A stretch of DNA of 63,221 nucleotides, counting the filler, from Choristocarpus tenellus KU-1152 (taxonomy: Eukaryota; Protista; Phaeophyceae): the NCBI GenBank assembly GCA_964200185.2. It is 14 parts of 14 records of this genome, joined end to end, with 100 filler letters (N's around TTAATTAATTAA, not from the genome) between each part and the next. Parts side by side here need not be neighbours in the genome. Positions count along the whole stretch, not along the records: positions 19,925 to 25,203 come from CAXNAD020011280.1; 13 more parts are not named here. One strand, given 5' to 3'. A program made the position numbers and the translations under genes. Below the pieces are notes generated by a model, which was not told where the DNA came from, did not search any database, and worked only from the letters and a program-made list of their open reading frames with translations. Every line of letters begins with the position of its first letter. The first letter of the stretch is position 1. Below are positions 3,667 through 26,001 of this stretch, in pieces.

Positions 3667-4146
3667 CACATGAAAAAATTGACCCCAAATGGACAGCCGC
3701 CACCCCCTCCCAGATGCTTTGAGCCACAAACAGGGAAAAACTCGTACCCTCTAAGATACTTTAACTCAGCTACTGATCTTAGCAACACATTTTTGTGTTG
3801 TACACTGTAGTATATAAATAAATCGATACCATTCACTGCATCTACTGAACCACAAAAAAGGTTTGAATCATCCCTGATAACAAGAATTCAGCACACGTAG
3901 ATATTTGAAGAACGAAATATTTCATATTTTTGCTTTTCATACAAGATCCTCACATAAATATTGACCTGTATTTTCCTATGTAAATGTCAGTAGTAACTAT
4001 AAAACTCACGAACCATTCCCACTTCAGTCGCACAGGTATACTCCATGGACAGAGGTTGATAAGACGTCAGACCACTTGAATATTGAAGGACATCAGATGT
4101 AAACATTGAAGGATTGACTTGGGTTTAAAAAAAGAGTTTTGCACAC

Positions 4147-7100
4147 CTAATATTGACCTCCTCTGGGGCACCATTTGCAATATACGTTTTGCAAATAAAG
4201 GTGAAGCTCTCAAATTGGTCTGCTTCCCTGCCTAGGAACCCACTGCAAGTCGAAAAGTCCCCATCTTGGTACCTAGATGCACATTGAGGAAATGACAAAG
4301 TCAGATCGTCGGCCAAGGGGAAAAAAATGTGGTTGGTATTTGCATATTGAATTGGATCAGAAGGAAGATCATCACACCATGCTGATATGGAGACACCTAC
4401 ATGATTGGCACACATACTCTCGATTAGAGGCAAGACTATTTATGTGATTATTTCGACCTAAATGGCGTGTTTTACTGTACCATACACTCTAATTCGGAGT
4501 TACCGTAAGATAAACAAGTGCATATAATGTCAATGCGGTGATGGTTGGAGCACAGCCAATTCCTGAACAGGTCAAGTTACTGAAAAACTCTGAGAACTCA
4601 CTTATCAGTTTATGTACCAAGTTTAAAGCTATGCGCAGCTGATTCATAAAAAGCCACACTGCACTAGTACTGCAGATACGTTGGTCAATAATCCTACTAC
4701 CTTACCCAACCCTCAATTTGCAACCTCTGACAACACATCTGCTCTTGACATAGAATGTTCTCGAAAAACTACAAACAAAATACCCTGAGGAGTACTTTTG
4801 TGTCTAACTCTACATATAAACACATTTACATAACCTTCTAGCCTATCAGTGGCTCCAACATCTTCCTACTTGCCTGGAAACCTCGGTGAGGAAAAGGATA
4901 GATTCATGACACAATGCCTTTCGTGCAAACTCCTCAAAGGCAGATGCCAACATGGGTGTAGATGCTAACCGCTCAAAGTTCCACCGTGGGTCAGAGGAAG
5001 AGGAGGTGACGCCAACAGAAAGAGATTGCTCTATTGAGGTGTGTCCTCCTGCCTGTGATTGGTCTTCAGTCACACCAGCGTTGCTCTCCATGGCGTTAAT
5101 GTCAGGACTTGTATCTATGTTGATCGAGGGGGACCTTCTGTGCAAAGAGGTGGGTACAGTCGATGACAGAAATCCCAATTCGAGTAAGCTATACACATAA
5201 GAGAAAAAAAGAAAGAGCAGTTTCTCCTTACACGTATCTCAGTTTGAGTTTGACATAGATACATGACCTGGTTCTCCTTGCAATTGGTTGGCTTATTGAG
5301 GTGACACCACAGACAAAGTCTGTCTTACCATTTTGATCTTGAAGCGAGTTGGTGGAAAAATAGTAGAAAAGGCAGCCCAGCAAAGACAAAAACCATGCAG
5401 TCAGAAAATTGTGCAGCAAACTCTTCAGTTGCATGACTCATTATCTAGTTACTTTAGGTTCTATTCCGGATCCACCTCTCTTTAAGGGCTAGGGTTTGCT
5501 ACATCACATCTGCATGCATACTCACGATGAGCTCTGACCAATTCTGGAGCTGATATTGCTGCTTCTACTAGTTCGACTGAGGAGAACTCTGTTGGCATAG
5601 GATCTTTTGGAGGCCGACAAGGGATCAAAATGCAGTCGCCACATTGGCTCCAGAATGCTGAAGATCCACATAAATGTCAGAAAAAAGGATGATGGACAAG
5701 TAGTATGTTAGTCACAGAAGTTTCAACATTGTGACCGTTAGGTCTTTTATAGAGCAGAGGTCAGATCTAACAATAAGATTCAAAACGAAAATAAACGAGA
5801 ATAGCTATAATTTCAGCTGTCCAGAGTAGCAGCACTTTTAGGTGGTAGGGACAATAGGTACTCTAATTCGCCAGGCAACAGAGGGTTCCAAGTTCTGTTC
5901 TCTCAAGTATTTGAGAGTACTGTGCAGCACCACTGTCTATTTGTAAGGTTTATCTCACACATAACATCCTTAAGTTCTCCCACTAGTACCTGCTATATTA
6001 GTTTGGCTTCAAATTTGCACATATCTTCACAGGGAGTACGGTTATGTGTTCAATTCAACGGAAGTCATGGAGGGATTTCATTAAACACCACTTGTGTGAC
6101 GTGGAACAATTTGGCATACCTGATGGAGAGGAACAAGTTTGTGGCTATGACTGAGACGTTCTGGACACTCATCCATACTTGAACATTGGAACTCCCATAA
6201 TTAGGGACAACCTTGAAGATGACTGCACAAAGGGATTGCATCTCACATCAGTCAACACAAGGTTAGCGATGGGAGTGTAAAGCATTGTGGAGGAGACGCC
6301 TGAGTGGTGGTAGTAAATTAAGTCTAGAGTGGAATACTTCAGCCCTCCAGAGAAACAGTGGCTTCACTCCACCCTTTCAAATTCACACCACAACAGCATA
6401 GGTAGACGTTGAGCAGATAATTGTGACAGCTGGAGCAATCACCCAGAAAAGGTTTGAAAAATGCCCAAATTTCTTTTCCTGTGAAGTGGACATGATACAA
6501 CACCAGCATTCACAACATGTACCCTGAAAACCGCAGCGAGAGAAAATAAATAAACACGTTTCAAACAGTAAAGAAGTCAAGCAATTGGAAGGGGAGATCT
6601 ATCTTTAGGTACTCGAAACTGTAATGAATCTCTTTGCGGTACACACAAGTCAATGTTTGATCTACCAGGGCCCTCTGCAGCAGCATAAACGGGGGAAGTC
6701 ATACAGCACATGTGAACTCTTAGGCAAGCACAATGGAATGGAACACATGTACCCTAGCACTTATGAGAGAAGGATAATATACCAGTAGAATACGTACCAG
6801 CCCAGCTGATCAAGATAAGCATTGCAAACACAAGCTCTTTGCTGATGTCAAAGATGTCATCGACATTCCTGTCGAAAGCACGTACATGTTAATAAAGGGT
6901 GAAGATTGCTGTGAGAAAAGGTAAATTTTGAGGTGAACTACCAACTATACATGAGTCAAAGTATCTTAAAGGGTATAGAGCCGTGTTCATTTGGGGCTAA
7001 ATTCCAACGTTGCGATTTTGATGTAATTCTGGCTATCGTGTTTGTTAGGAAGTGTCAATATCCCTTCTTCCAGATGCACCTTTTCATATGAAGTATACAT

Positions 7101-7330
7101 TTTACCTACATCAAAATATTTCGGAGTAGGTAAAATGTGAAAACAAGTTATGGGAAGCCAAGTCCCAAACGGACAAACAGGGAAAAACTCATACCCTCTA
7201 AGATACTTTCACCCACATGTGCATAAAGTCACGCACAGCACAAGAAACATATTTTTTTCTTATTTTTCACATACCAGTGAGAGAACGGTCTGGAAGATAG
7301 GGAAGAAAGCAACTAAAGATTACTTCTAGC
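4147..7330 (-). CDS. 7TM-RGS-type protein (TM helices plus C-terminal RGS domain), multi-exon fragment
   Basis: Exons 5188-4874 and 4272-4147 give RGS-like AFEEFARKALCHESILFLTEVSRYQ...FICKTYIANGAPEEVNI. Upstream exons encode hydrophobic helices (LVAFFPIFQTVLSL; NVDDIFDISKELVFAMLILISWA; VWMSVQNVSVIATNLFLSI). Confidence 0.75.
6953..7214 (+). mobile_element. MITE-A (~255-260 bp, Sola2-like ends), intronic
   Basis: TIR GAGTCAAAGTATCTTA...TAAGATACTTTCACCC; 4-bp TSD ACAT. Confidence 0.9.
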
Positions 7331-7739
7331 TGGAGCACACCATGATATCACGTCAGAGTCAAAGTATCTTAGAGGCTAGAGCCGTGTCCATTTGGGGGCC
7401 AAAATCCAATGTTGCGATTTTGATGTNNNNNNNNNNNNNNNNNNNNNNNNNNNNNNNNNNNNNNNNNNNNTTAATTAATTAANNNNNNNNNNNNNNNNNN
7501 NNNNNNNNNNNNNNNNNNNNNNNNNNTTTGGCGGCCTTTACCCCGCCCGGTCTCTTTAGAAACCCGGTCCCGGTGAAAAAAACCCCAAGCGTGTTTTTTA
7601 CCCCCAAACCCCCCCCCCCCCCCCCCCTCCATCTAATCTCCCCCACTCAAACTTCCTTTCATAGACAAGGATAGGGAGGTATATTATTATAGCATAGAGG
7701 ATTGAAGGGAACAAGGCCGAGAATCCTGATTTAACCAGA

Positions 7740-10700
7740 AACTGGCTAACGAGCTCTTCCCATTGCAATTCAATCAACACCTCATCCTTTCCTGCCGTCA
7801 AGCCTCCATTCTGCCAGAGCTGCAAGGTGTCCCTCTAACCACGAGGATGATCCTCTGCATCCAATAATAAGGTGCACCATTGAGGTTGATGAGATAATAA
7901 TAAGGTGCACCATTGAGGTTGATGAGATAATAATAAGGTGCACCATTAAGCTTGATCAGATACCACAATGCCTCCACGATGGACGTAACTGTGTCTTACT
8001 TCAGACAGTCCGTATTTCATTTTTTATTTTTTGTCTATTGGGATAATCGACATTTCAATTTGAGCGGCGTCATGAGTATAAAATTTCCAATAAATTTCCA
8101 ATAAAATTTCAAACAGACTCTTCAACTATTGATAGGTAGTAGTAGTAGAGCACAGCAGTTCTTGATAGAGGGTACAGTTACAGTGCTACTTCTAGGGGTG
8201 GAAAAGTACAGCAAGTCCTTATTGATAGATGGTAAGAGTGCAGCAGTTCCTGGTACATGGTACATGGTACAGTACTTCAGTGCGATGTTCTTTCCCGCTA
8301 GGTCATTGGTCAGTCTTGAACTGGAGAGGATCGACACAATTATCTGCAGCCTTCCAGAACTCACATCCTTAGTGAAGTCGATGCTCATCTCTACAAATAC
8401 GTCAAGATATAACCCTTAAAAACAAACTCCTTGTTACCAAGTAAAGAAAAAATAAATCACAAGTACGCCTTCCATACTACCCCAAGTCATTTACACCAAA
8501 CCAAGCAAGCACTAGGACCCATGAAAAAAAAGAAAAGGATAATAGATGTACACAGGTGGGAAGAGGTAGGAGGGGTTACCTGCAATCAACCGTACCCTCT
8601 CAATGGACTTGGTACCACTACAGCTCCACTACGAACCATACTGGAACTGCAATGCTTAATAAATAAAATAATAGCATGGTTCTAAGAAAGCAGCAATACT
8701 ATCAAGAAAGTAACAATACTATTAAGGTGCCAAAGAAAAGCTCACTCACTGTGCTGTTTGGCTGAGTCTCCTTCTTCCCAGGGTCACAACCAGGTTCCAC
8801 GGTGACCATCTCCTCCTCCTCCCCCCCCCCTCCTTCGGCGAGGATACAAGAAGAACTGGGTTTAATCTCATGAAAACTCTTCACTGAAGGAAGCATGCGA
8901 GCACGTGGTGTGTATGTACTACACCTACTTCCTTACCACACTGTGAAATAAAGACTTCACAACAGTTTTTTTTTCCTTTCATCTCCAAAGGATACACTCT
9001 GTTTCTGTTATCGTCCACGGTTGGTTGTTTCCTATCACATCAAGCACAACTTCAAGATGACTGTGTGTGCATGTGTATGTATGTGTGTGTATGTATTTCC
9101 TGTGTCATCCATCCAGTGACATCTAAAAAAAGAGTAAACAAAGTAGAACACCAGCAAAATTTTTATTATGGTAGCAAGAGCACCGCTTAAATATTTAAAA
9201 ATGCTACAAAATGGCAACACTAGATAGTATGGTAACACTAGATAGTATGGTAATATTAGATAGTATAGTAATACTACATAGTATGGTAATACTACATAGT
9301 AATAACAAAAAAACAGAAAAGGTGACCATCATGATACTTTGAATAAAATCCCTACAAAACAAAACCAGGTATATCCTCTCTTTGTCAAAACACTCCTTCT
9401 ACAGTGAGAGTACATTCCCCCCTACACATTTTGCATCACACACCACTCCTCCCTCCCTCCCCCTACATTCCTATCAATCCATCCACCCACCCATCCGCAC
9501 CTCCTTTCTGCCCCCAGACAAATCCGTAACTACATCTTCAACCAGTGGTCTTGGGGATTCAGATATTGGCACGTGTAGCAAGGGCTGAGGAGGAAGGACA
9601 GGCATGGTCACAGTCAAAACCCTCCTTCCATCAGAGCCTGCCTGGGAGAGCCGGGCTGTAGCCTTGGACTCATCTGCCACAGGGTACTTCAGTGACAGGT
9701 CTAGGTACCTTTGAAGGGAAAATAGAAAAATACCAAAGGGTGAGGTATGGTGAGGTGAGGTGTGGTGAGGTGAGGTGAAGAATATATAATACAACAAAAA
9801 ATAAGAAAATGATAATATCAATAAGAACAAAAATAATAATATAAAACAATGCGAGCGGAAGGTTCAGATACCCTGAAAGGAAAAAAAAAACGCAAATAAA
9901 GCCAGTCCAGTGGGGTGAGGTAAAACAAGAAAAAAGGTACAATATCTTCTGTGGCAGGAGTTATACCATCTCTCCCCCTGTTCAACACCGGTTCAAACAC
10001 TTCATGATCGAATTAGTAATGAACAGACGGAGTATTACATAACCCTAGCCCTAACCCTAACCCTAACCCTAACAACAACAACGTTAATAAATTTAACAAT
10101 TAGGTACAATGCCTGACAATACCCATTTCCATCAAATGATGTAACGTAACATACACAAGCACGTGTTCCATATAGAATATTTAGGGTTAGGGTTACAGGA
10201 CATTCACAGCGCAAACCAAGGGTGATGGCAACACAAAAAAGGTGGGAAGGGAGAGAGAGAGAGAGAGAGAGATCGCGTGAACTTCCCTGTCTAAAAATAT
10301 TCAGAATATATTTTTATTAGTTTAAAAACAAAAAATAGTATAAAATATAAAAATGACATTGCAAACAAAAAAACAAATTCCTGCCTCCAAATATATCTAA
10401 AAATAAAAAAGAGCATCGATGTGTGTCACTTCGAAGCCTCTATTCATCGTTTAACCCCCCGATAGTACCTCTATTCGTCACTTCAAAGAAGTTTGTGGGG
10501 GTCAGGGCTGACTGACTATAAATGTAGTAGAAGGCGGTAGAAAAAAGGTTTTCATTGCCTTGGTGGGGAGTTTTGCAACAAAAAAATGAGAATAATCTGG
10601 CATGGTCTGCCCTGTTCTACACTACCCGCCTGCAAAGCCATAACAAACGCCTTCCCAATGATGTATATTTCCTCATCCAGGTAAACCGTTCACTCAGAGA

Positions 10701-19824: not shown

Positions 19825-20142
19825 NNNNNNNNNNNNNNNNNNNNNNNNNNNNNNNNNNNNNNNNNNNNTTAATTAATTAANNNNNNNNNNNNNNNNNNNN
19901 NNNNNNNNNNNNNNNNNNNNNNNNCCCCCCCAGGTACTTTGGGTCTATGCGGGAAACAACAATGTGCGACTGGGTCACCTGCTAGAGTAGATGTCGGTTT
20001 TGTGGATACAACTTGGTATGTGGACAACATAACGCCATCTATCATTCTCATTTCAAAGCGAGGATATCCTAGTTCAGTACCCCAGCAGTTGAGACTCTGC
20101 CGGGGTATGTTCCTTATTCCGGTCTGCCGAAGATAAATAGGC

Positions 20143-20634
20143 TGTTAGAACACTAGTAAACACCGCTGTGTCTACCGACCAGATAATCTCTGACTACCTA
20201 GTGACTACCTGGTCGGTAGACACAGGGGTTTTACTAGTGTTCTAACAAAAGCTAATCTCGGGGATCGCAAGCTGTTAGACTTGATGAGGTTTCGCCCGAG
20301 GGTTGCTATCCCTCTAATCAGTGACCATCTTCGGCGGGGCAGTTGCTAATGTGAGTTTGTGTATCCTGGCTGCGTATTTAGCCTTTTGACGGATGTGTAA
20401 CCATATATCCATGGCGGGATTCGATCCCATGACAGTAGCGTAGTACTGAAAAAGGCTAGACACGCCGCCAGGATACACAAACTCACAATAGTAACTGCCC
20501 CGCCGAAGTTGGTAGCTGATTAGAGGGGTAGCAACCCTCGGGCGAAAACTCATCAAGCCTAGCAGATTGCAATCCCCGAGATTAGCTTTTGTTAGAACAT
20601 TAGTAAACCCCTGTGTCTACTTAGTGTTCTAACA
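20143..20634. mobile_element. Palindromic (foldback) TG...CA element, copy 1: U-X-X'-U
   Basis: Starts TGTTAGAACACTAGTAAAC and ends TAGTGTTCTAACA; whole element is self-complementary; flanks TAGGC/TGGGC. Confidence 0.75.
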
Positions 20635-21064
20635 TGGGCACCGTACTTGGCATATGTAGATTCGATTACTAGTCGTAAGGTACAGAAAATAGGAATGATG
20701 GGAACTGAGTGTGAACAGGGAACAAGATGGGGGCAGGTATATGGTACTTGGATTGGCATATACGGCAAAAATTCGAAAAGGCAACGTGCGACACATCAGA
20801 GATAGTGAACAATGGACATTGGTTTAGAGGTTACCTATTGCACAAGTCACATATGCTCAATCAGCCACAAAACTAATCGGTGTCTACTCCGCCTATAACC
20901 CCAATCTATGCACATCATCATACATTGCATGAAGCGACCTCAGCCAATGGCCTATCTTCCACCACAACACAACATCGTAGACACATAGTGCGCTATGTTT
21001 ATTGCTATTAGTACCAGTCAAAAACCTTGTCGAACCAGCAGCCAGGGAAACAGTAGTCTCTCTA

Positions 21065-22660
21065 TAGTGGTACCAGTAGCTTCATCCTCTGGGGTTGTCC
21101 TGTCATAACGTTTGACGTAGACATAAAATAAAAAAACTAAAAGCATATTCGCGATGCCCGTCACAAGGCCCTCCAGCGTACAGGCTCCGTTTTTTCGCCA
21201 ATTTTCTATTTTTCTGAAGAAATAACGGTCGTATTGGGGTTCGAACCCCGCATTTTAGGTCACCAAGAGTGGAAACAGATGCACTATTACTTGGTTAAAG
21301 TATAGGGTTTAGCCTGGAAAAAGGCCTCCCCACCCTTTCTTCTTGTGTTGATTTCTCGAATGAATGCAGAGACAGGAAGAAAGGCTTAATCAACTTTATA
21401 CGTCCAACCTGCCCTAAGTCAAGGATGAAGAGTAAATGTACGGCATCTTGCAGGAAGTGGGAGACACCAAACCATCGGTGTACAAATCTCAATCTCACGC
21501 CCTCTTCTTCCCTGGCTTCCACGTCAATGGCTACCTTAACCTGCTACGCGATCTCTCCGAAGTAAAGGATTTGGTGGTATTGAAAAGTCTCCATGGCTGC
21601 CTTTGTTACAATCACTTTCTCCTCCGCCTTGCGAGCCCTTTCGACCTTCTTTTAGACTTCAGAACCCTTGTAGCCCAACCCTAACACCTTCTTTCTTGTT
21701 TCCTTAATTCTCTATGGCTCACACAGCTTCCAAACAGCCTGGGCCTGCTGCAATTGTCGACTACTAATATATTCTACAACCGGGTTTCGCTTATGCGTTT
21801 CCTGAGCGCAATGGCACGCAGTCGCACTACTCTCTTTCCCAACCTTCCCTTCGGGCGGCCACCCCGGCTCTCCGTTCGCCTGCCGTGACCAGACGTTCCC
21901 ACAGACTTCGTCACTGTACCACCTGGTGATGGACTTGCCACACTCTTCCTGATTTTCTGAGGCGGCAGAGACTGCAGAGCAGTGATCCGATGTGGTTGAA
22001 GATCCAACTACTTTTGTGCGGTAATGCTTTCAATGCATCTTCTTTCAGTGTCAGTGTTGCGGCCCCATGATCCATTTTGTGATTTGATTACGCTGCTGCA
22101 CCACACTACTCGCACTTTCTCGTCACCTCACATTGTACTGAGTGTCACACGGTACTTGCATTTCCGTCGCCTCTTGACAGAGAAGGTGCCGAGGGTAGAT
22201 CCAGGGGGCAGGGTGGCCTCGGCGACTCTCCTTGTCTCATCACCATGGCTCATGTTGCTGTATAAGTCATGTGTGTGTGTACTCACATTCTAAAAAGGTG
22301 TTGAAAATATGTCCAGAAATCTCTATTTTTTATTTTTTATTTTTTATTTTTTTCGGTATCGCCGCACCGACCAAACTTGGGCAGCGACTTACCCCGGACC
22401 GAGTTTTTTACGAAGAGTTCGGCAACCACTTTATTTTTGTCCGTTTTGAAGTCTTCACCTTCCAAATTGCGCCAGAGATGTTCCCTCTCGTTTTTTCCAC
22501 TATTTGATCAGGATATAGGTCCCATTCCCCGAAGACTGGACATTCATGCATACAAACCTTCAAAATCTCTTATCATACCCTTTTATTTGATATTATATAC
22601 ATTTTTGTATGACCTTATCCTAAGTCGAAAGGAGATGAGGGTCGAGCTAGCTATTGGGCA
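21065..22660 (-). mobile_element. Family C TIR element, copy 1, with a decayed internal ORF
   Basis: Left end TA-(T/C)AGTGGTACCAGTAGCTT; internal sequence shared with 23209-24664 and 46997-47910. Confidence 0.65.
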
Positions 22661-22714
22661 TCGCAAAATTTGACTATACACCGCACAAGCCCCACCAGTA
22701 CAGCGCCGAGTGTC

Positions 22715-22954
22715 CTACGTGAAGGGACTGAGGATACCCTGGGCGTCCACAAGCTCCTGAACAAGCATACCCACCACACCGATCAGGCCCAGTCGTCCAT
22801 TGCTCAACTCCTTTGACTGCATCACCTTCAACTCCTCAGGTGATTCGGGCTTGAGCCCAGCGGGATCAAACCCGATATCTCCTGGGGTGTAGTCGGCCTT
22901 GGGGTTGCCCATGTCGGTCAAATAATCCAGTTTCCCCCAACCCTGCGTGATAGC
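22715..22954 (-). CDS. Light-harvesting complex protein (LHCX/LI818-like), last exon
   Basis: DYTPGDIGFDPAGLKPESPEELKVMQSKELSNGRLGLIGVVGMLVQELVDAQGIL contains the FDP.GL and KEL.NGRL helix-3 motifs; AG acceptor at 22956-22955. Confidence 0.9.
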   Translation of the reverse strand, partial: AITQGWGKLDYLTDMGNPKADYTPGDIGFDPAGLKPESPEELKVMQSKELSNGRLGLIGVVGMLVQELVDAQGILSPFT

Positions 22955-23208
22955 CTGATTTTGTTGTCGGTTTCGGTTTTTAGTCAAGCCTCACACACCA
23001 TCAAAGAAATGGTGGATGGTTCAGAAAGTCCTTATTCAAATAGGACATTTTGAGTCAAGCTGCACACGTTCACTAGAGAGAAGGGGTTGATGGTTCAGAA
23101 AGGCCTGATCCAAACCGCATATTTGAACATGGGGTTGGGGAGTTTGGGCACAACACAAAGGCCTCGGAGGATGCAGTGATGTCATGTTGTAGTGGTAAGG
23201 AATTCGTA

Positions 23209-24664
23209 CAGTGGTACCAGTAGCTTTGCCCTCTGGGGTTGTCCCGTCATACCTATTGATGTAGACATCGGATTTAAAAAAATAGAAAAATATTCGTGAT
23301 GCCTGTCACAAGGCCCTCCAGAGTACGGGCTCTGCTCTCCTCCCCAATCATACCTTTGACCGGCCACTCTGGTTCTCCCTTCGCCTGCCGTGATCAGGCT
23401 TCCCCACAGACTTCATCACTATACCACACCTGGTGGTGGAGTCGCTGTTCTCTTCCCTCTTTTCTGAGGCGGCAGAGACTCCAGAGCAGTGGTACGATGC
23501 GGTTGAAGATCCAACCACGTTTGTGTGGTAATGCTTTCAATGCGTCTTCTCTCAGCGTCAGTGTCGCGATGGCGTGGTCCATTTCGCGATTCGACCATGC
23601 TGCTGAGCCACACTACTCGCACGTTCCCGTGACTTAACATCACACTGAATTTCACACAGTACTCGTTTTCCGGCCTCTCTCGACGGAGAAGGTGCCGACG
23701 GTAGATCCAGAGGGCAGAGTGGCCTTGGCGGCTCTCCTTGTCTCACCGCCATGGCTCATGCTGTTGTGCAAGTCGTGTGTGCGTGTGCTCAAAAGAAGAG
23801 TATCTTAGAGGGTATGAATTTTGCCCAGTTTATACATTTGGGGCTTGGCTTCCCGCCGTTTATTTAATGACATTTTCCTACTCCAAAATGTTTCGAAGTA
23901 GGTTAAATATGTATGTTATGAAAATGTGTGTTCGGAACAAGGATAATGGCACTTCCTAACAAAATAATAGCCAAAATTTTATCAAAATCGCCACATTGGA
24001 CTTTGGCCCCCAGATGGACACGGCTCTACCCTCTAAGATAATCTGACTCAGTTTTGCCCTGTTTGTCCATTTGGGGCTTGGCTTCCCTCGGGGTATTTTA
24101 TGACATTTTCCTAATCGAAAATATATCGGAGTAGGTAAAATGTAAACGTTATGAAAAGGTGTGTCCAAAACAAGGATATTGACACTTCGTAACAAACACG
24201 ATAGCCAAAATTACGTCAAAATCGCAACATTGGATATTGGCCCCCAAATGGACGCGGCTCTACCCTCTAAGATATTTTGGCTCCTCACAGAAAGTCTGCA
24301 AAAGGCGTTAAAAAGAGGAAATTCTTGGAGGGTTTTTCTCCTTTTTGTTTCAGTGAGGGCTGCACCCGCCAAACTTGGGCAGCAACGTACCCCGGACCAA
24401 TTTTCTGCAAGGAGTTCAGTCAACCACTTCATTTTTGCAAGTTTTGAAGTCGTGACCTCAAAATTGCGCCGAAGATATTCCCCCGCGTTTCTTCCATTAT
24501 TCTATTGGGACAAAGTTCCCGTTCACCGAAGCTTCTACAATCCTGGATTCAAGCCTTCAAATGGTCTTGTCATAAGCTTTCATCTGATATATATATTATT
24601 GTATATCTGTTGTGGCGTTCCAGTAAAAAAGGCAGAACTGCCACAGAGTGCAAAGCTACTGGTA
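23209..24664 (-). mobile_element. Family C TIR element, copy 2 (internally deleted, with a MITE-A dimer inside)
   Basis: TA-CAGTGGTACCAGTAGCTTTGCCCTCTGG ... CAGAGTGCAAAGCTACTGGTA inverted ends. Confidence 0.7.
23792..24283 (-). mobile_element. MITE-A head-to-tail dimer
   Basis: Two bodies with one left end; TSD CTCA. Confidence 0.85.
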
Positions 24665-26001
24665 TATCACCTTAGACACCCAACCACACATCACATACCT
24701 TGAGCAACAATGAAGAGGGGTATGCTGCTATCTGAAATGACTTGATTAATTCCTTGGTGGGTTGGACAGATTTGTAGACGAAGTGTAAGGAAGGGGAAAG
24801 GAGTAGTGAAACCTTCAAACCCAAGAGGGGTTTCTCTTTCACCAGATCTATCCTATTCTGTGGGGATCACTAATCATTACCTACAGATTTCTTGCTACAA
24901 TATTTCCTATTCCTGGACTCTTCCATGTTCTAGTTCGTCAACCCATGCTTACTATTTCTTACATAATCTACTTTTACACATGGATAAAAAGCATGTTCTC
25001 GACATACTCTCCTGCTTTGAACTTCTTGTGAACAAGGGTCAAAGTATCTGGGAGGGGGTGGCGGCTGTCCTTTTGGGGTCAATTTTTTCATGTCTCGATT
25101 CTTGGGTGATTTGGTTCCTTACGTTGGAAGGATAATGAATGTACACTTTTCCCGATTTTGGTCCAAATGGATACTCTGGTGTAGGCGCCCGCCCACGCTC
25201 TGCNNNNNNNNNNNNNNNNNNNNNNNNNNNNNNNNNNNNNNNNNNNNTTAATTAATTAANNNNNNNNNNNNNNNNNNNNNNNNNNNNNNNNNNNNNNNNN
25301 NNNGGAGGGGGGGGGGTGGGCGGAGGCGTTTATGAGTAATGACATGCACTGTACGACCGTGTTTGAAAAAGAAAAAATAGAAATATAGGTGTACACACAC
25401 ACACAAACACACACACACACACACACACACAAAGCATGCCTATTTTGTCCCTTTCACACAAGGAAGGTGTCGACAACGCCTGCTCGGATTGAGGCGCAAG
25501 TGATAAAAAAAAAACTTGGTGATGAGGGCATTGTTACACAGTCAAGGTTACAGCGGGGGGTTGGACAAGTGTTACCAACGAACAACGCGGTGCGGACGAG
25601 GTGCTCTGATTGGGTAATTTTATTCCTAGCACTCATGAAGCAGTAAACTATTCAGCCTTGGTACAAAAAGAAACACAATACAACACAGCATGTACACACA
25701 CATGGGCCTCCTGCTCATGCAAAACAAGCGCCTTCCTAGTTTCGGAGAGAGAAAGTGACGAGAGAACATACAAAAAAAAGGGAAAACAAGAATATATATA
25801 TATATATACTTTTAAAAAAATCCTTTTGATTTTTGTATATCGATGCTGATGCACACACATCAACCAAAAAAAAAGAAAAGAGAGGGAAGAACCGCCCTGA
25901 GCAGAATTAAAGAAAAATCCTTCAACCTGAAGTTTCCCTCCCAACTCTCAACATCAGTAGACACAAATCAGTGACACTGCCATTGCGCTCAATAAGCTCA
26001 C

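Follow-up and report, generated by a model that had tools for sequence, protein, structure and literature searches.

A nested palindromic repeat in Choristocarpus tenellus, most likely the relic of a foldback/MITE-type transposon

Anatomy of the nested palindrome and its neighbourhood

The window analysed here is a stretch of 63,221 nucleotides, filler included, of the Choristocarpus tenellus KU-1152 genome (assembly GCA_964200185.2), in which 14 parts of 14 records are joined end to end; all positions count along this window. The part of interest, a 5.3-kb piece at 19925-25203 (CAXNAD020011280.1), contains a near-palindrome of 492 bp, the limits of which fall exactly at 20143 and 20634. The repeat finder returned inverted arms of 162 nt each at 20226-20387 and 20450-20611, 90% complementary and 62 nt apart, together with two inverted pairs nested within the left end: 20143-20160 against 20230-20247 (18 nt, 100% complementary) and 20159-20191 against 20200-20232. 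Folded as single-stranded DNA, 20133-20644 forms one long hairpin of -204.5 kcal/mol, compared with -60.2 +/- 5.1 kcal/mol for shuffles of the same stretch (z -28). The nested palindrome described in the original prediction, which was made by reading the sequence, is thus real.

Aligning the 492-bp element to its own reverse complement yields the modules listed in Table 1: a hairpin module, U, and a non-palindromic module, X. The original prediction had given the order as U-X-X'-U, with U a hairpin of ~100 bp and X a module of ~195 bp. These sizes hold for the left-hand copies, where U-left is complete and folds as DNA with -41.1 kcal/mol (z -12), and X is of full length. They do not hold on the right: X' contains no counterpart of the final ~53 nt of X, and U-right, compared with a full U, has lost ~60 nt of its hairpin tip and folds weakly (-7.4 kcal/mol, z -4). 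Because X' is without this distal stretch, the 62-nt centre of the palindrome is asymmetric; its fold is unremarkable (z -0.3). We set the end of X at 20442 from another copy, seen as a joint in a short-read contig (20441>20143), in which a single T separates position 20441 from the start of U. Taken alone, X has neither significant terminal inverted repeats (P ~0.12) nor an unusual RNA fold (z -0.4).

Table 1. Features of the element at 20143-20634 and of the surrounding piece (window positions)
Feature	Position	Strand	Description
Left candidate target-site duplication	20138-20142		TAGGC, direct reading
U-left	20143-20247		Complete 105-bp hairpin module, ends TGTTAG...CTAACA
U-left, arm a	~20143-20182		Inverted pair with arm a'
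U-left, loop	~20183-20208		
U-left, arm a'	~20209-20247		Inverted pair with arm a
X	20248-20442	+	Full-length 195-bp module, non-palindromic, non-coding
Left-arm private changes	20328, 20345, 20371, 20376		Family state from reads
Palindrome centre	20388-20449		Asymmetric: last ~53 nt of X plus 8-nt junction AGTACTGA
X'	20450-20589	-	~140 bp, inverted X minus distal ~53 nt, ~90% identical to X
Right-arm private changes	20488, 20548, 20558, 20562, 20566, 20571		Family state from reads
U-right	20590-20634		Truncated 45-bp U: 31 nt from arm a joined to the final 14 nt from arm a'
Right candidate target-site duplication	20635-20639		TGGGC, direct reading
Direct repeat, first copy	21063-22593		~74-87% identical to second copy over ~850 bp of shared blocks
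Insertion in first copy	21188-21823		~636 bp
Perfect palindrome	21238-21251		GGGGTTCGAACCCC, tRNA T-arm/B-box-like
T-rich low-complexity run	22317-22355		(TTTTTTA)n-like, bordering the first direct repeat copy
LHC fragment	22715-22987	-	ORF limited to the C-terminal third-helix region of an LHC protein that binds chlorophyll a/b or a/c, PF00504, E 1e-14
Direct repeat, second copy	23207-24590		See first copy
Insertion in second copy	23792-24332		~541 bp
Tandem duplication	23819-24283		Period ~233 bp, 83-87% identical, within the insertion in the second copy
Inverted fragment	24633-24664		Short, from the start of the direct repeat

The ends of the element are sharply defined. The 14-mer TGTTAGAACAYTAG occurs four times, twice per strand, at 20143(+), 20247(-), 20590(+) and 20634(-), where chance expects 0.1 occurrences, and its copies are paired in the orientation expected of transposon ends. 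The terminal 14-mers match at 13 of 14 positions, and the inverted repeat stops precisely at TGTTAG and CTAACA with no extension into the flanks. The TG...CA ends noted originally can be read directly, as can the two flanking pentamers with their single mismatch, and the outermost bases, TGTTA at 20143 and TAACA at 20634, satisfy the TGTNR...YNACA rule. The flanking pentamers, a candidate target-site duplication (TSD), agree at four of five positions in the one copy that could be read from end to end. Chance would give such agreement with a probability of ~0.016 at one fixed length, and a higher one if further lengths are permitted, so that the candidate is weak as an isolated instance. A 9-bp duplication is absent, the 9-nt left and right flanks being different on direct reading.

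The remainder of the piece contains a direct repeat, both copies of which are interrupted by insertions (Table 1); scanned ORFs in the two copies contain no Pfam domain. ARAGORN found no tRNA at the small palindrome GGGGTTCGAACCCC in the first of these insertions, and a box within X, GGGATTCGATCCC (20416-20428), is similar to it. The LHC fragment, the one gene recognised in the piece, has its best single-domain PDB matches in cryptophyte ACPI and diatom Lhcr, a generic red-lineage Lhcr/FCP/ACP likeness, and its nearest database proteins are at most 60% identical. It stands between two repeats and shows no upstream exons, and is therefore probably a pseudogene or the fragment of a gene; its sequence suggests a host alga with a red-lineage plastid.

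We searched the element for coding, RNA and retroelement signals. Apart from the unrelated LHC fragment, no Pfam domain was found in ORFs of the element or its neighbours, and the 5.3-kb piece holds no transposable-element protein remnant or coding capacity of the element; an 80-aa ORF across X-X' has no protein relatives by word search. ARAGORN predicted no tRNA, and no Rfam family scored above threshold in the element. Weak miRNA-precursor matches on U-left, the best at 29.8 bits where the gathering score is 50 and others lower, reflect a generic hairpin and carry no weight as evidence; miRNA-precursor models are drawn to any hairpin. Two identities were considered and rejected for X. A tRNA-derived SINE had been suggested by the GGGATTCGATCCC box, which lies at the 3' end of X and has no upstream A box; ARAGORN found no tRNA and Rfam no tRNA or SINE at E up to 1. 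A hammerhead retrozyme is equally unsupported by Rfam, with no hammerhead family at E up to 1, and in the CTGATTAG...CGAAAAC string in X, read directly, the conserved G8 position is a T and 4 extra nt stand between helix II and GAAA.

Neither U has a TGG-initiated primer binding site (PBS) within ~10 nt. U is followed by AAAGCTAATC as its next 10 nt; read the opposite way, TGG first appears ~13 nt in, and the bases following it are unlike the complement of a tRNA 3' end. A search for a tRNA-iMet PBS with up to 3 mismatches found none in the piece. Nor is there a polypurine tract by U, the preceding 15 nt being mixed or pyrimidine-rich at the two types of junction (...GATTAGCTTT and ...ACAGTAGCGT) on direct reading.

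The repeat family in short-read contigs

Contigs of three public runs of one organism (runs X1, X2 and X3) were placed on 19925-20900 at a likeness of at least 80%. A 348-nt contig of run X1 covers 19926-20273 with 0 differences, running from the left flank through U-left to 26 nt into X; another from the same run covers U-right and the right flank (20592-20900), also with 0 differences, and run X2 contains an exact match to 19927-20163. Both runs with coverage of the locus carry the insertion. The palindrome could nevertheless be a product of assembly, through the collapse of a repeat or a chimeric fold-back read, for example, given that palindromes are difficult to assemble and that neither these contigs nor any other short-read contig crosses the whole element. 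Fold-back read artefacts, however, produce identical arms, whereas the arms here are merely 90% alike and their deletions asymmetric. Furthermore, both outer junctions are matched exactly by contigs of an independent short-read assembly, and arm-specific bases are found at roughly single-copy depth, as for the reference A at 20481 in X' (13.8 of 1864 depth in X1). An assembly artefact is thus unlikely, and we accord it barely any probability.

Across the three runs, 434, 289 and 68 contigs match at 80-100%, nearly all of them on 20189-20650. The 434 contigs of run X1 comprise 51 at 99% likeness or above, 93 at 95-99%, 166 at 90-95% and 124 below 90%. Depth summed over contigs in this run, which as the tool warns is no copy number, is 17-43 on the flanks, ~1,700-1,800 on the two inner U arms and 4,000-8,300 on most of X, with its highest value, 19,721, on the X core at 20288-20320. 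The contrast nonetheless reveals that the family is highly repeated and that X, above all in its core, is much deeper than U. In run X3 the depth on the flanks is nil while that on X is strong; the family is therefore independent of this locus.

The modules are arranged differently in other copies. Contigs in the order X'-U-X have joints at 20620>20231, 20620>20202 and 20624>20202, with differing loop sequences. One arrangement passes from X' through a single U arm to X (20621>20246), and another joins X to U (20404>20583), besides the X, one T, U joint used above to place the end of X. Module orders are thus mixed (U-X-U, X'-U-X and X'-a-X), with X in both orientations; U loops and second arms are highly variable among copies, and some U modules have no second arm. 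Loose ends were found before 20589/20590 in six contigs of X1 and four of X3, and before 20244 in six contigs of X1, in each case with an agreement of ~0.5, that is, in unrelated flanks. In some copies, therefore, U at its TGTTAG end and X at its start each have a real boundary against other DNA. X is also found without U, and in some copies both X and U adjoin non-repeated DNA; being far deeper than U and found without it, X may spread or persist by another route.

Reads also hold a second, ~85%-identical copy of both flanks (19950-20100 and 20654-20850). One piece of this diverged flank lies in a 1070-nt contig, and the depth is 18.6 on both sides. Were both sides to belong to one contig, it would be too short for the 492-bp element and would be a candidate empty site or shorter insert.

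Beyond this organism, an exact scan with the most conserved X core gave no match in metagenome contigs, prokaryotic genomes or viral contigs. A 19-mer of U is found at ten metagenome loci, five of whose contigs have the same 20-mer with one extra T. The likeness is confined to the 19-20-nt seed, and we rejected these loci as relatives of the element, seed-only matches reflecting chance or an unrelated conserved gene. A full-text literature search with motifs of the element found no paper.

The reads also bear on how the two X arms are related. Two pairs of positions, 20258/20579 and 20356/20481, have in both arms a base that is absent from at least 93% of the family depth (97% at 20258, 93% at 20579, 97% at 20356 and 99% at 20481). 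At the other informative mismatches between the arms, one arm has the family base and the opposite arm a private change (Table 1). The two X arms are sister copies, and the combination of shared rare bases with one-sided private changes means that the palindrome either goes back to the inverted duplication of a single X or arrived already palindromic. Decay since the duplication amounts to ~5% per arm, or ~10% between the arms, and with such divergence this copy gives no sign of recent activity. The missing 53 nt of X' and tip of U-right would be central and tip deletions of the kind that stabilise long palindromes. The junction after X starts with AGTAC, resembling the diverged U start behind 20441 in other copies, which weakly suggests that a middle U has been lost.

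Origin and mobility of the element

Any account of the element has to begin from what is observed: its structure, repetition, modularity and sister arms, and its lack of retroelement signals. We consider it most likely to be the relic of a foldback/MITE-type transposon rather than a member of a new class of palindromic-LTR elements. The specific form of this reading, to which we give a probability of roughly one half, is that of an old copy, now decayed, of a modular foldback repeat that is non-coding and high in copy number. This copy would be a composite with U mini-MITEs at its ends, mobilised by an integrase-type DDE enzyme acting in trans. The two hairpin U modules would be the mini-MITEs, their outward ends TGTTAGAACAYTAG following the TGTNR...YNACA pattern of integrase-type DDE enzymes, and they would enclose an inverted pair of the abundant 195-bp X. 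We infer the class of enzyme, the TSD and an earlier mobility of the unit as a whole: the outer U ends would be recognised by a DDE transposase or integrase, most like that of Ginger2/TDD, which would excise or copy all of U-X-X'-U and integrate it at a 5-bp staggered cut, with TAGGC/TGGGC as the trace. At U, template switching or recombination would flip or duplicate X, giving rise to the mixed module orders; X could stand in either orientation between U modules because U looks alike in both. The X arms would have arisen from one inverted duplication and then diverged by ~10%, while a central deletion (probably of a middle U and ~53 nt of X') and the deletion of the U-right tip would have made the palindrome less perfect. 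Counting against a transposon is that no transposase, empty site or insertion polymorphism was seen in the piece and the runs.

These observations might be accounted for differently if U and X were a satellite-like alternating repeat (~300 bp per U+X) and not a transposon unit, an alternative that we regard as possible but on the doubtful side. The hairpin-prone U would drive inversions, fold-back duplications and deletions through recombination or replication template switching, and the TG...CA ends and the 4/5 match of the flanks would be coincidental. The recurrence of X'-U-X and X-U joints is what alternating arrays would give, and U loops and second arms do vary greatly among copies; the inverted duplication of the X arms requires no transposase, the TSD is imperfect and comes from one case, and the surrounding 5 kb is repeat-rich too. 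Yet the copy studied here is short and isolated, has a different sequence on each side, and its palindrome stops exactly at the 14-mer. Several other copies likewise end at TGTTAG against unrelated sequence, and the variety of flanks among hundreds of contigs speaks for dispersal over a small number of arrays. It is unlikely that the element is a TRIM-like non-autonomous LTR retroelement with the palindromic U modules as its LTRs, copied by reverse transcription and integrated by an integrase of copia or gypsy type. Its proportions would fit (U of 105, X of 195, then U), its TG...CA ends and 5-bp candidate TSD are as in plant TRIMs, which have a 5-bp TSD (PMC3532108), and the U-X-U-X orders recall the multi-LTR arrays known for TRIMs (PMC4079214). 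Against it stand AAAGCTAATC after U, the first TGG only ~13 nt in the other way, and the lack of a tRNA-iMet PBS anywhere in the piece, of a polypurine tract before U and of any tRNA-like or ribozyme element in the searches described above. The right U is a mere 45 bp, X lies both ways round between U modules, which is not predicted for an LTR element copied from RNA, and we know of no precedent for a hairpin LTR.

Less probable again is that the U hairpin represents a new type of self-complementary transposon end that mobilises the DNA between pairs of U in either orientation, or that the element is a retroelement whose palindromic LTRs prime without tRNA. The former would be a case of hairpin-MITE composite transposition in a eukaryote, with the integrase motif twice per U, and in both cases an integrase-type enzyme would be mobilising a non-autonomous element in an unclassified way.

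As it stands, then, the element is an ordinary though tidy foldback repeat. Should a census of the family agree with the foldback/MITE-type reading, an alga of the red-plastid lineage would offer a clear case of DNA-transposon relics with integrase-type (TGTNR) ends, and the family would show a self-complementary terminal module yielding both families of mixed order and foldback copies. Repeat annotation and assembly are affected as well, given that several hundred short-read contigs match the element and that palindromes break contigs, and the long hairpins could be sources of small RNA.

Comparison with known element classes

Termini of the form TGTNR are common to Gypsy LTRs and to the Ginger1 and Ginger2/TDD cut-and-paste transposons, and the terminal inverted repeats (TIRs) of Ginger2/TDD are 50-180 bp long, with TSDs of 4 bp, or of 5 bp in TDD-4 and TDD-5 (Bao et al. 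2010, PMC2836005; PMC10045372). The element resembles this group in obeying TGTNR...YNACA, here as TGTTA...TAACA, and in its long TIRs, the whole element being an inverted repeat. Short non-coding derivatives of a few hundred bp in tens to hundreds of copies are also known for Ginger2/TDD, and Ginger2-derived MITEs in insects likewise begin with TGTTA (PMC3845634). Beyond TGTTA, 10 of 16 positions of an insect Ginger2 TIR are identical here, which is not significant. In contrast to Ginger2/TDD, each end of the present element is a hairpin with the terminal motif twice. The target of Ginger2/TDD is AT-rich (RTATAY/TATA), whereas the candidate here, TAGGC, is GC-rich, and its length of 5 bp is compatible, with a 4/5 match in one copy. 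Autonomous Ginger2/TDD elements encode a Gypsy-integrase-like DDE transposase; none could be linked to the element within the 5.3-kb piece.

TRIMs are similar to the element in size, with terminal repeats of ~100 bp and an internal domain of ~200 bp, and also in their TG...CA ends and multi-repeat arrays. As a class they have terminal repeats of about 100-250 bp and TSDs of 4-6 bp. They have a PBS by the 5' LTR and a polypurine tract by the 3' LTR, both of which are absent here. Their LTRs are direct repeats and their internal domain is never inverted, whereas here the terminal modules are hairpins and X is inverted; since both U-left, with its TG...CA ends, and the shorter U-right are palindromic, direct and inverted orientation of U are indistinguishable. 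The copia-type palindromic-LTR element put forward originally is consequently not borne out, there being no PBS, no purine tract and a right 'LTR' of 45 bp.

Drosophila FB is reported to make a 9-bp TSD, which is absent at 20143-20634. The arms of FB are tandem sub-repeats, whereas here a hairpin module alternates with a 195-bp module, and there is no sequence relationship between the two. The likeness lies in construction: FB/Foldback4 elements are non-autonomous class II elements that consist almost entirely of long modular palindromic ends, with copies that vary in module number, deletions and order, and Foldback4 has modular palindromic ends of variable module content (PMC2955051).

The original prediction of a non-autonomous foldback element thus stands, in that the element is non-coding, strongly palindromic and belongs to a high-copy family. 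It had named independent occurrence of U and X, each with TSDs of its own, as a result that would speak against it, and the contigs go part of the way towards this: X has far more summed depth than U, and in some copies each of them adjoins non-repeated DNA. Its view that the element fits no class was overstated: TGTNR ends, long TIRs and a TSD of 4 or 5 bp describe Ginger2/TDD (PMC2836005, PMC10045372), while palindromic ends built of modules are characteristic of Foldback-type elements (PMC2955051). In our reading, the integrase-style ends and foldback structure place it among the foldback/MITE-type elements, with no need for a new class.
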